The translations under genes were made by a program, and so were the position numbers. The notes under the pieces are model-generated. The model ran no database searches, was not told the DNA's origin, and saw only the letters and a list, made by a program, of their open reading frames with translations. A stretch of 64,000 bases of DNA from Dimorphilus gyrociliatus (lineage: Eukaryota; Animalia; Annelida). Below, piece by piece: positions 2,883-51,899 of the stretch (position 1 is the first letter of the stretch; every line of letters starts with the position of its first letter). Location of the stretch: assembly GCA_904063045.1 (NCBI GenBank), contig CAJFCJ010000006.1:4852408-4916407 (forward strand). The letters are read 5' to 3'.

Positions 2883-4036
2883 TTAATTAAAGTTAAGTTT
2901 TAGAACGTAAAATAAAATTAGCCAAAGTAGAGTTGATTTTAAAATATCTCCTGAATTTGGTTGATAAAGATTACAACTTGAACCCGGTTGGCATTTCATC
3001 ATAGCTTCAACTTCCGATTGATTGTCAATGCAGCCATCAATTTTATTTTTCATAATTGCTTTCAAAGCTTTTATGCTTTCATCATTTGAGCAGACTGTGT
3101 TACTTCTGTGTTGAAAACATTATACTTGATAATTGATATTAGAAAACTGGTATTAATCTTACTTTGCGTTGAATATCATTATTTTCAATTTGATGTTTAA
3201 TTTTTGTAGTTCTCTTATTTCTACTCTTCCAAACACTCTAAATATTTGAAATGGCTTAATATTAAATATGCCATATATAGATATATAGAAAATTATTTTT
3301 CAATTACAAACCCTCCCGAATTGAATACTGTATCTTTTCTACCGTTCAATATAACATGGGCTCTCTCACCAATAGCAAGACTAGCCAATCTACGCGAAAT
3401 TTGGTCCCAATAAGAGCCTTGAGCAGAGTGATAATAGGGTGTACATGATGTACAATTTCGACCAAATTGTGCAGGTTTATCCGGATTCGAGCACCAAGTT
3501 AAATCATCCAACGCATAACCTAATAAAAGATCGTTTATAGCTGTAAATCGACCATATTTAGAGCGAACATCCTGCTTAAACCTCCCTCCAAATCCACTCC
3601 AAAGTAACAACTTAAGAGGATAATTGAAAGGTAATAAACGAAAAGCAAGTTTGACGAAATACTTACGTCATTCTCTTTTGTTATCGGATTAGCGAAATTA
3701 ATTACCAGTTGATAATTATGATTGTTACTATTGCAATTACCACGACCAAGACCTTGTTTAAAGAGGTTCAAAAATTGATTGCACTGAACTTTCGATTTCC
3801 TTATCCTAATTAGACAGATAAAATGAGTAAAGAAGTTTTAATTGAAACCATAATAACAAAGGTAAGAAGCAAAAGAATAAATTGGAAATGGGAAAACTTG
3901 ATACAAACTTTAGACATCTATTCACAATGATTCGGTCAATGTTTTGCGTAGTAGTCGATGAACTTAATTCGTTAGCGTTACATGTTTTATAGGAAAAGTA
4001 GACAAGGAAAAATAGGTAGAAATTCTTTATAAACAT
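2883..4036 (-). CDS. ADP-ribosyl cyclase / NAD glycohydrolase (CD38/BST1 family), signal peptide and probable GPI-anchor tail
   Basis: Motifs LLWS, LLGYALDDLTWC, YWDQISRRLA, HVILNG and catalytic FGRVEI align with CD38/Aplysia cyclase. Hydrophobic N-terminus from ATG 4036 and hydrophobic C-terminus (STLLWLILFYVLKLNFN). Confidence 0.85.
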
Positions 4037-46714: not shown

Positions 46715-47381
46715 TTACCAAGGACGCCAAACCCTTTCATTCTCAATATTCTCTTTATTCTCTTCGTTTCCGTATGAAAGTTTCCTTTTTGTATTTCGAA
46801 TATCCGATAGAGGTGGCCGATAGTTTGCGTTATAAACTTGTCCATAAGGCTGACAATTCACGTACATATGCCTTCTCACTATTATTTAAAGAAAAAAAAT
46901 TAATTATTAATATTACTCCTTATAGGCCTAATAAAGACAAAATTAGTAATTAAAAAGTTACTATTTACAGTGATTTTATATTAAATTATTGAAATTCAAA
47001 TAAATTAATTACTGTCGTTGAATGGAAAGCAATAACTTAGTGGAAATCTAATCAATTCACTTATCAAGATCGATAATCTTATTGAGAGTTTACAACCAAT
47101 GCAACATATTGGTTCTGATCTTAAGCTATGATAAGTAGGTGAAGAATAAGTAAATGAATGTTACCTTCCATATCTTTTGATATTCTCTTTACGTAGCCAG
47201 TTAAATGTTGAACAGCTAATTCTAATATTTCAGCTTTTTCCATTGTTTCTTGGTCTTCGGGTCTTTGGCCTGCGGCAGTTAAAACTAATTTCCTTATCTG
47301 CTCTAAACAATTATTGATCCTCTCGCGCCTTCTCTTCTCTACGGCGGTTTTTACTAGCTTCCTTCTCGTTTGCCTGTCCAT
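46715..47381 (-). CDS. Minimal Hairy/E(spl) (HES) bHLH repressor, 126 aa, WRPW tail, no Orange domain
   Basis: Exon 1 47165-47381 (217 nt) encodes bHLH VEKRRRERINNCLEQI...MEKAEILELAVQHL. Exon 2 46715-46878 (164 nt) joins in phase and ends ...ENERVWRPW*. TATAA at ~47419-47424. Confidence 0.9.

Positions 47382-49490: not shown

Positions 49491-49526
<36 letters not shown>
49491..49526. repeat. (GA)18 microsatellite
   Basis: Directly visible. Confidence 0.95.
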
Positions 49527-49529
<3 letters not shown>

Positions 49530-50580
49530 TGCACCTAAAACGTTCTTATCCCTCTTATGTTTGCACACGTATTAATGATTGATAATCTTTTAACTAATTA
49601 AAATATAGTAGGCTATGAATCAAAGAACTCTTTTAAGTACTCAGAAGGGGTAGAAAGAAAAAGGGAGAAAGATAGAGGGAGAGTAGTAGTAGTAGTAAGG
49701 GAATTTATATTCGACTACCTTACATATAGATTTATAAGGGACCTTGTAAAAGTAATGTGGTAATTTATCATGAAAAAAAAAACGATACTATTCGGTTGCG
49801 AAGATGAATTTTTCTCTTCTTTTTCCCTGCCTCTGTTAATATACGTACATTGATAGTTTTTGTGTTGTATAATATATGTCAATGAAAAAGGAAAACAAGT
49901 GCAACAATTGGAGGATTGCGACAAATTTAGCTGATTGACTAAAAGACAAATTTTTCTATCATTTCCGCCACTTGCAAACACCAATTGAAGTAGAGTTTAA
50001 TCGATCATTCTATTACTTATGGTTCACTACTTTATGATCTCGATATTGGATGATAAAATATCTTTCGCATATCAAAGACCGAAAGACCGAGTTAAGACGT
50101 TGTTTTATTTATTTGAATGTATTATATAGGATAATATAAAGGGTAATTATGTCTGATATGGTAATAAGATGTAATTAGGTCTAAAAAGAGCCCTTAATAA
50201 TTAACTGATGCTGTTCGTGGAAATTTGTTTCAAAACACCCAAATGACTTTCAGTACCATTAAAAAATTTACTTATCGAATACAACTAGTATTTTCGGTTA
50301 ATTACTTCATAATAAACTAATGTAGATAGGTTTGTCTTTAAGGGTTGAAGAAGAGATTTTCCTGTCTTAATGTAGATTTATTCAAGTCTTGCATCAAATA
50401 TCAACTTTTTAAAAAGCCACATCTAATTTAAATCGTTTCCTATAGAACTTGGAGATGTCTCTACCGTATGAACTATTTAATAAAACGGCCTAAATGGTAG
50501 TGATGTCATTCTTTTTCATTCAAATAGTTTATGTAAAAATAAAGAAATTCAAGTTTAGTTGAAAAGAATTAAGTAAAAAT

Positions 50581-50855
50581 ATGCGCGTACTCATAGAAAA
50601 CCTAAAAGAGTTTTGCAGGAGAGTAAGATGTCAAAAATGCGGTAAATGGACTTGGACAGGTTTATATTGATTTTCTAAACTGAACCTAGGTATATTGTTT
50701 ACATATTATATATTTCTGTCTAATTGTTTGAAGGTTGCGGTCAGCATGTACAGCAAGTAATGAATGGTATTTCGCCGTCTGACATATGTCATTGTAAGAA
50801 GAATGAATCGACTAGTAAGCCGTTTCAACAACCTTACTACTACTGCAGATATTAA
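50581..50855 (+). CDS. Small Cys/His-rich microprotein (CxxCGKxTWxGCGxH...CxC), spliced; start uncertain
   Basis: Exon to 50659, GT-AG intron 50660-50733, exon 50734-50855. Reads ...FCRRVRCQKCGKWTWTG|CGQHVQQVMNGISPSDICHCKKNESTSKPFQQPYYYCRY*. Start is ATG 50581 or an upstream ATG micro-exon (50455 or 50494). Confidence 0.75.
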
Positions 50856-51007
50856 GAAAACGTGGTCAATTAGTTTTGGTTCTGTTTTCAATCTATAATT
50901 AATAATCAATCTCGGTATCATCATAATAATAAAATGAAAGGAATTCTTAATATTTTCATCACAATTATTATTGTATTTCTAATCTGCTTACAGAAATGTG
51001 AAGAAAA

Positions 51008-51412
51008 TTATTCGTTTTCTTCGGTACGCAAGCGAGCGTGCCCGTTTGTCAACTTGATGTTTAGTTGTTGGGCTCTGTCGACGATGGCTTTTCTCTTCCT
51101 TGAAGAGACTGCGTGGCCAATTTCTCCGGCGTAGACGCGGTTTTGCATCAACAACAATTCCAAATCTTTCACGTTGTTGACAAGGAATTTCTTGAAGCCG
51201 TTGGGCATAACGTGACGTGATTTTGCGCTCGAGCCATAACCAACATTGGGCATCAAGAATTGACCCTTAAATCGGCGACGAACTCTGTTGTCGATACCTT
51301 TCGGCTTTCTCCAGCTCTTCTTTATTTTATCATATCTATCCGATTGGTGGCGAATAAACTTCTTTGTTCGCTTCTTAGACTCTTGGCGCTTTCTAAGTGG
51401 TCGTATCGCCAT
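51008..51412 (-). CDS. RPL32: 60S ribosomal protein L32 (eL32), intronless CDS
   Basis: [45 protein letters not shown]. Confidence 0.98.
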
Positions 51413-51899
51413 TGTTCTGAAGATATTAATTAAATTATTAAAACGATTTTAAAGAAAAAATTTTCATATGAGTGTTTATATAACAATATGGCGACTTTTA
51501 GCCTGGAACGATAATAGCGAAACTTGGTGATATAGATTATTTCAATGATTAAATTTTCATTATTTTACACCATTAGGAATCTTTGTTATCTTATTTAAAG
51601 AACACAGGTAAATTTATTCTACTATAATGACTAAAATATACAAATTTCTTTAATAACTTACACAAAAAGTTGCACACGCTTCTTATAGGCAAAAAAGGAA
51701 GGATCCTACCAGTTTTCGTAGAGCCTCTGCCATTACGACGCTTACCCCATCTACAGTTTATTTCAGCACTAATTCCCCTAACGGCTCTAGTTGTGTCGAA
51801 ATAATTCAAAGTCAGCTACATTAAGTACAATCAATTAAGAATTTATTTGGTTAAAATCATACAAAAAAGGCCTCTTAAACGAATAAAGACTTTTAAAGA

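Follow-up and report, generated by a model that had tools for sequence, protein, structure and literature searches.

An intron-split microprotein gene predicted in the annelid Dimorphilus gyrociliatus, and the unnamed, mainly actinobacterial family to which it is related

We analysed a 64,000-nucleotide (nt) stretch of the genome of the annelid Dimorphilus gyrociliatus (GenBank assembly GCA_904063045.1, contig CAJFCJ010000006.1, positions 4,852,408 to 4,916,407 of the forward strand), hereafter the window, whose own numbering is used throughout. Within it lies a small predicted gene whose Cys- and His-rich motif can be read only across a splice junction. A preliminary description of the window had proposed that a 74 nt intron divides this motif within a Gly codon, between its TWx and GCG parts, and direct reading of the sequence agrees, with GT and AG at the intron boundaries (Table 1). 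The intron is T-rich at its 3′ end and carries CTAAT approximately 10 nt ahead of the AG, and its length fits the species because the median intron of D. gyrociliatus is 66 bp (PMC7854359). Joining the exons (79 + 122 nt) yields 66 codons and a stop, and the predicted spliced frame reads ..FCRRVRCQKCGKWTWT/G/CGQHVQQVM..DICHCKK.., or in outline ...CQKCGKWTWT-G-CGQHV...CHC.... If the intron is retained, the frame ends after ...WTWTGLY, at 29 amino acids.

The coding region begins at ATG 50581, with an in-frame stop just upstream at 50560-50562. This was one of three starts offered previously; the other two, at 50455 and 50494, are each followed by a stop in the same frame. The predicted product of 66 amino acids slightly exceeds the earlier estimate of about 55-65, and it contains seven Cys and two His rather than five or six Cys and a single His. 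Seven of these residues (C12, C17, C20, C28, H31, C44 and C46) occupy positions conserved in the protein family described below. Exon 1 encodes an 11-residue N-terminal extension followed by C12, C17, C20, G21, K22, T24 and W25 of the family motif, and exon 2 ends in a tail of Lys, Ser and aromatic residues before the TAA at 50853-50855.

An AATAAA sequence begins 73 nt beyond the last base of the stop codon. The GC fraction is 0.41 and 0.39 in the two exons, 0.23 in the intron and 0.33 in the window as a whole. The AATAAA, the usual length of the intron and this exon/intron contrast are features of a eukaryotic gene. An RPL32 open reading frame (ORF) converges on the small gene, and its stop at 51008-51010 confirms the separation of 153 nt noted before. 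We consider it very likely that the locus is a real, functional two-exon protein-coding gene, with splicing and expression in the worm predicted from its sequence.

Table 1. Coordinates of the small gene, of nearby features in the window and of the related fungal gene
Feature	Location	Strand	Description
Exon 1, coding part	50581..50659	+	Met1-Thr26 plus first base of Gly27 codon
Intron	50660..50733	+	74 nt, phase-1, spliceosomal, GT..AG; splicing predicted from sequence
Exon 2	50734..50855	+	Remainder of Gly27, C28, G29, H31, C44, H45, C46, tail, TAA
Candidate polyadenylation signal AATAAA	50928..50933	+	First AATAAA past the stop; consensus match only
HES/Hairy-like ORF	47121-47381	-	bHLH signature
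72-amino-acid ORF	50706-50924	-	Antisense to exon 2
Ambispora leptoticha small gene	L121 ~3109-3430		Contig CAJVPS010010987.1 (chimeric model region L121:1431-3609)

The strongest support here for the splice model comes from the way the two exons match the family. The exons were tested separately against a profile of bacterial members (A1) using hhalign. Exon 1 matches columns 1-16 (E 5.3e-9, 63% identity), and exon 2, read from the genomic Gly codon, matches columns 17-43 (E 3.4e-10, 48% identity). The end of one match and the start of the other thus coincide exactly with the intron, and both order and phase are correct. A homology search had been suggested earlier as a check on the gene, and the outcome is that each exon matches the family significantly and collinearly.

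A profile of bacterial members was also run with hmmsearch over the whole window, divided in six frames into 3317 stop-to-stop pieces. Matches are confined to the two exon pieces, with 37.6 bits for exon 2 and 24.2 bits for exon 1. No other piece exceeds 6.6 bits and the top score over 20 shuffled windows is 9.8 bits, and a chance origin of the motif was rejected on the strength of this difference. The exon peptides had no match in Pfam or NCBIfam, which is a weak negative because the motif is split between them. A word search with exon 2 returned no candidates.

The twelve residues other than Met that are invariant in the family are all kept in the worm protein (C12, C17, C20, G21, K22, T24, W25, G27, C28, G29, H31 and C44), and the ligand position after C44 is of the CxC type (C44-H45-C46). 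The protein also fits the small, single-domain size range of the family, whose bacterial members have 37-79 amino acids. The one departure is at the start of the domain, where the Met-Cys of the bacterial proteins is absent: 11 residues precede C12 and Phe stands at the Met position. We read this as lineage variation that does not exclude the protein from the family. Judged from its sequence, the worm protein almost certainly belongs to the unnamed MCxxxxCxxCGKxTWxGCGxH family of small proteins, and its residues 12-46 are best explained as one compact Cys/His-rich domain.

The family is real, is abundant in Actinomycetota, and is without a name, a curated model or a studied member. A degenerate DNA pattern for CGKxTWxGCGxH, scanned against one genome per bacterial and archaeal species, located at least 120 bacterial loci. 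Among the matches listed, approximately 112 are from Actinomycetota, with a few from Acidobacteriota, a metagenome-assembled genome of Myxococcales and Thermoflexus. The bacterial ORFs begin MC: the start codon lies directly before C2 in 121 of 122 copies, and ATG lies exactly nine codons ahead of CGK in 115. Residues M1, C2, C7, C10, G11, K12, T14, W15, G17, C18, G19, H21 and C35 are invariant across 55 diverse aligned members, which bears out the consensus given in the preliminary description, in the form MCxxxxCxxCGKxTWxGCGxH..C. After C35 the copies divide between xC (54/122) and xG with a subsequent H, K, R or T, in most cases His (64/122).

A word search with the bacterial alignment returned 3362 clusters at E<=1e-3. 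Those of the 120 matches listed that carry a name are called 'hypothetical', 'uncharacterized' or 'unannotated', with the exception of one mislabelled as a phage terminase, and none of the 120 has a precomputed Pfam domain. None of six sampled intact members reaches the cut-off of a Pfam or NCBIfam model; below the cut-offs are PF02928 (zf-C5HC2), at 16.9 bits against 22 for one bacterial member, and TIGR02605, at 12.4 bits against 31.3 (E 0.12). The family had been called uncharacterised, and these scans, together with literature searches by family motif and by sulfur-cluster terms that found no paper on it, agree with that view. It occurs on 60 actinobacterial plasmids as well as on chromosomes.

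Several observations concern individual bacterial copies. The 12 plasmid records listed of the 60 have no annotated feature under the match, and the gene table of that collection is incomplete: the match on Rhodococcus erythropolis plasmid pREL1 (L128:5001-5165) is unannotated there although GenBank holds the protein as BAE46169.1. On pREL1, a gene for a sigma-70-family sigma factor ends approximately 100 nt upstream of the family gene on the same strand. Two family copies occur within 8 kb of each other in 6 of 120 loci (L020, L022, L060, L083, L107 and L114), and four of these six combine a short copy with a long one ending ..FF.RLFGR, which suggests diverged paralogous pairs. A scan of a viral collection gave one match (IMG/VR, L127:9068-9244; 60% GC), a 59-amino-acid, long-type member of actinobacterial character. 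The contig is a putative actinobacterial phage or prophage and says nothing about the worm.

Relatives in eukaryotes were sought by comparing exon 2 with 1.84 billion (1.84e9) cluster representatives using phmmer (E<=1e-3). Of the three matches obtained, P0121 and P0122 proved on reading to be repeat artefacts and were rejected. The third, P0123, is a 319-amino-acid model (CAG8661927.1 / A0A9N9E6A8) from the arbuscular-mycorrhizal fungus Ambispora leptoticha, matched at residues 260-288 with 52% identity and 35.5 bits; BLASTP with exon 2 aligns 15 of 29 residues as identical (E 3e-13). This model is a chimera. Its upstream partner, a secreted, Pro/Thr-rich protein with a hydrophobic C-terminus, is encoded by a gene that ends at its own stop near 2430, and it has been joined in silico to a small MC.. 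gene some 700 bp further on.

The small Ambispora gene reads ATG TGC TAT followed by GTGAGC, and its exon 2 encodes TVACTKCQKTTWAGCGRHIQA; a phase-1 intron comes next, and the exon after it contains ..LCHCKK and a stretch rich in Ser. In hhalign, the encoded domain aligns to the bacterial profile with E 7.6e-15. Eukaryotic members of the family therefore exist, start with MC, carry introns and are mis-annotated, and the collections hold the Ambispora copy only inside the wrong gene model. Should the last predicted intron of this gene be retained, the small protein would end in a hydrophobic stretch (GITLLETIVYGAIIFAIALWLSG..).

The preliminary description had placed such a family in actinobacteria, fungi and plants, among other groups. 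Its existence and its abundance in Actinomycetota stand, and for fungi there is the one species just described. For plants there are leads only: look-alikes found with a language model include clusters of Streptophyta (scores 0.88-0.90) as well as Ascomycota, of 68-84 amino acids. No animal relative appeared in the exon-2 word search, in the phmmer search of the 1.84e9 representatives or in a search with a worm and fungus alignment. This absence is weak evidence because the same collections also miss the worm's own protein and that of the neighbouring RPL32 gene. The word search with the worm and fungus alignment returned bacteria only, and a metagenome scan for the CGxH-13-CHCKK ending gave five matches, all due to chance (stops, or no motif context).

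To what the domain might look like, a structural model of the family offers a guide. An AlphaFold2 model of a 39-amino-acid member, computed with the family alignment, is compact, confident and metal-free, with a mean predicted local distance difference test score of 91.3. Residues 3-6 and 13-16 form a beta-hairpin, and short helices start at 22 and 31. The loop of the hairpin carries the CxxC, the first helix has C18 and H21 at its start, and C35 and C37 come past the second. Zinc is commonly bound in this way, by a CxxC in a beta-hairpin and, after it, Cys/His where a helix begins. As we read it, the modelled layout resembles a typical small zinc site, while the seven ligand-type residues could also accommodate a second, incomplete site, an iron-sulfur (Fe-S) cluster or reactive thiols.

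Small zinc-ribbon and treble-clef proteins are most plausibly what the family works like. The FmdB-family CxxC_CxxC_SSSS proteins (TIGR02605), zf-C5HC2 (PF02928) and CW domains are likewise short and Cys/His-rich, with a CxxC knuckle in a beta-hairpin. Unlike relatives of these, the family scores above threshold with none of them, and its GKxTWxGCGxH segment has no counterpart there. Given the conserved Cys and His, metal binding by the worm protein and its family is likely. The N-terminal extension of the worm protein contains two Glu and, as we read it, is unlike a mitochondrial presequence.

In the ESM Atlas, clusters labelled 'thioredoxin domain-containing', of about 101-107 amino acids, align to the 39-residue model with a template modelling (TM) score of 0.76 and a root-mean-square deviation of 1.3 over 39 residues. 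These clusters may be fusions or read-through gene models.

The surroundings of the bacterial genes point towards sulfur chemistry. We counted, from seeds, the genes within 3 kb of 122 bacterial copies, and 59 of the copies have at least one neighbour of sulfur or thiol type. A flavoprotein resembling coenzyme A (CoA)-disulfide reductase (CoADR), mostly fused to rhodanese, accompanies 24 copies, in 14 of which it is the gene immediately upstream in the same orientation. The substrate reduced by CoADR-rhodanese fusions is CoA persulfide or polysulfide. A fusion of metallo-beta-lactamase/persulfide dioxygenase (PDO) with rhodanese is found near 17 copies, a CsoR/CstR-family repressor near 16, thioredoxin near 13, a TauE/SafE exporter near 12 and DUF302 near six. 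On pREL1, the neighbours of the family gene are DUF302, DUF2892, thioredoxin, CcdA, TauE and rhodanese. In Streptomyces coelicolor, sulfane sulfur is detected and cleared by a circuit of PDO-rhodanese, TauE, rhodanese and a CsoR-like repressor (PMC7533328).

In several loci a thioredoxin gene lies directly downstream of the family gene, for example after a 3-nt gap in L009 and overlapping it in L119.

From these sulfur-enzyme neighbourhoods the family is proposed to be a metal-binding accessory of thiol/persulfide metabolism. Bacterial members keep the company of CoADR-rhodanese, PDO-rhodanese, CsoR/CstR, TauE and thioredoxin, much as do the accessory proteins of cst/BigR-type clusters (TusA-like proteins, rhodanese, DUF302 and DUF2892). 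In contrast to those accessories, to which the family has no sequence or fold relation, its part in sulfur relay is suggested by neighbourhood only. The chances that the family acts in sulfur or thiol-redox metabolism in bacteria appear to us about even, and the same role for the worm protein is doubtful; the transfer of the role from bacteria to worm is the weakest step of the explanation.

Taken together, these observations suggest the following explanation, which we favour with some reserve. The worm gene would be real and would encode the metal-binding domain of this family, and the protein would work in thiol/persulfide (reactive sulfur) chemistry, as the bacterial gene neighbourhoods suggest. 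The predicted fold would be a knot of a beta-hairpin and short helices, in which seven conserved ligand-type residues might hold one or two metal ions, with zinc as the default guess. The ligands would be C2, C7, C10, C18, H21, C35 and either C37 or H38 in the bacterial proteins, and C12, C17, C20, C28, H31, C44 and C46 in the worm. Such a protein could serve as a partner, as a carrier of sulfur or metal, or as a sensor beside enzymes of the CoA-persulfide-reductase and persulfide-dioxygenase types.

A number of points weigh against this explanation. Approximately half of the bacterial copies lack a sulfur-related neighbour within 3 kb, and operon context does not carry over to a eukaryote. 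A sequence search of the PDB with the bacterial family found no similar solved structure, and fold searches of the PDB gave no match (VIA-align Z<2; CW domains at Foldseek E>5), although the model is very small and this last negative is correspondingly weak. The ligand assignment is a guess because no solved structure is similar by sequence or by fold. With Phe in place of the bacterial Met1, behind the 11-residue extension, any role that depends on a free N-terminus would differ in the worm. The worm's own protein was returned neither by the exon-2 word search nor by the search of 1.84e9 representatives, and an exact look-up shows that the neighbouring RPL32 protein is not on record either.

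The chemistry could differ from that of structural zinc, with the Cys and His residues holding an Fe-S cluster or acting as redox-active thiols, disulfides or persulfide carriers. Seven ligand-type residues do not split neatly into two four-ligand zinc sites, the bacterial neighbours are thiol/persulfide enzymes and thioredoxins, and fold searches of the ESM Atlas gave thioredoxin-domain clusters beside the family's own. However, genes for Fe-S assembly did not stand out among the bacterial neighbours, and the model shows the CxxC hairpin with Cys/His at the helix start; we regard a chemistry of this kind as rather unlikely. The failure to find annotation support for the worm gene in the protein collections searched would also suit a decaying or silent relic that is homologous to the family and neither expressed nor functional in the worm. 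Against this, the frame is intact over both exons, the splice sites are canonical, and all invariant residues have been kept in a strongly AT-biased genome, which argues for selection; a relic is improbable.

How the gene came to be in an annelid bears on two sets of relatives. Like the actinobacterial small proteins (for example BAE46169.1, RER_pREL1-02260, from Rhodococcus erythropolis PR4 plasmid pREL1, and those encoded at L018:1775-1951 and L056:4766-4882), the worm protein is small and single-domain, with the same invariant residues and spacings, including the 13 residues from the His to the next Cys. Unlike theirs, its gene is spliced and AT-rich, and the protein has the 11-residue extension, Phe for the initiator Met and a tail rich in Lys, Ser and Tyr. 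With the Ambispora gene it shares a eukaryotic, intron-bearing and AT-rich character and a CHCKK ending followed by a Ser-rich stretch. The Ambispora protein, unlike that of the worm, starts MC (MCY) and has Q for the invariant G of CGK; its gene has introns after codon 3 and, in phase 1, after ..HIQA, and is annotated only as the tail of the chimeric model. Over the 38 positions of the core, the worm protein has a median of 19 identities to 250 bacterial members and a best of 24, to actinobacterial proteins, and 20 to Ambispora by hand count. The worm and the best actinobacterial proteins have an identical 10-residue run, GCGQHVQQVM, in common.

We lean slightly towards an origin in a eukaryotic branch over direct transfer from an actinobacterium. 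If the gene was retained vertically but patchily, or spread between eukaryotes, the worm copy would sit in a branch with fungi and probably plants and would have been lost or overlooked in most animals, a history that is credible if somewhat short of an even chance. The top exon-2 match among the 1.84e9 representatives is indeed fungal, a CHCKK..S.SK tail common to worm and Ambispora was not seen in the bacterial sequences inspected, and both genes combine spliceosomal introns with host-like, AT-rich composition. Yet only one eukaryotic relative is verified, its introns lie at other positions than in the worm, its core identity to the worm protein is no higher than that of bacteria, and the collections searched yielded no other animal sequence. 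Horizontal transfer of an actinobacterial gene, possibly plasmid-borne, into the Dimorphilus lineage, with subsequent AT amelioration, N-terminal extension and the gain of one intron, would agree with a family that is overwhelmingly actinobacterial and mobile, with the best core identity and the shared run, both of which belong to actinobacterial proteins, and with the lack of an animal homologue among the 1.84e9 representatives. But the bacteria of top identity are the selection, out of thousands, of a word search that favours GCGQHVQQVM, exon 2 scores higher with the Ambispora gene than with any bacterial representative, and absence elsewhere in animals is weak evidence from databases that are without the worm's own protein. 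The wholly host-like composition and the presence of an intron also mean that a transfer, if there was one, is old; on these grounds we hold direct transfer to be possible and the less favoured course.

The worm gene is a hidden member of a real, wholly uncharacterised family, which sets it above an ordinary gene, though it falls short of a system of a new kind. The family is strongly conserved, has thousands of members and is tied to a testable setting, the actinobacterial gene clusters for reactive-sulfur (sulfide/persulfide) homeostasis. Its spliced eukaryotic members have stayed hidden, the annelid copy being missing from the protein collections searched and the arbuscular-mycorrhizal copy mis-fused to a neighbour, and they illustrate how gene finders miss microproteins whose sole recognisable motif is split by an intron. 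The protein offers a compact target for structure determination, metal analysis and genetics, and if animal copies prove rare it would provide a clean case for ancient patchy retention versus bacterium-to-animal transfer. As a long shot, the family might have a hitherto undescribed fold, binding metal or persulfide and acting together with CoA-persulfide reductase and persulfide dioxygenase, and a sediment-dwelling animal would have kept a copy, or acquired one from actinobacteria, for defence against sulfide. If true, this would be a rare bacterial-type sulfur-stress microprotein in Metazoa.

The RPL32 gene beside the small gene encodes eL32 in full (Pfam E 1.9e-49), with eukaryotic eL32 chains as its best PDB matches. 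Contamination was considered and rejected on account of the intron, the host-like composition and the location of the gene on the same contig as the animal RPL32 and an ORF of HES-like bHLH type. An Rfam scan of positions 49500-51600 gave no match. The HES/Hairy-like ORF, recognised by its bHLH signature (..VEKRRRERINNCLEQIRKLV..), lies approximately 3 kb upstream of the small gene and adds animal context. Between the small gene and RPL32 there is also a 72-amino-acid ORF antisense to exon 2, which most likely is spurious or belongs to the 3′ untranslated region of RPL32.

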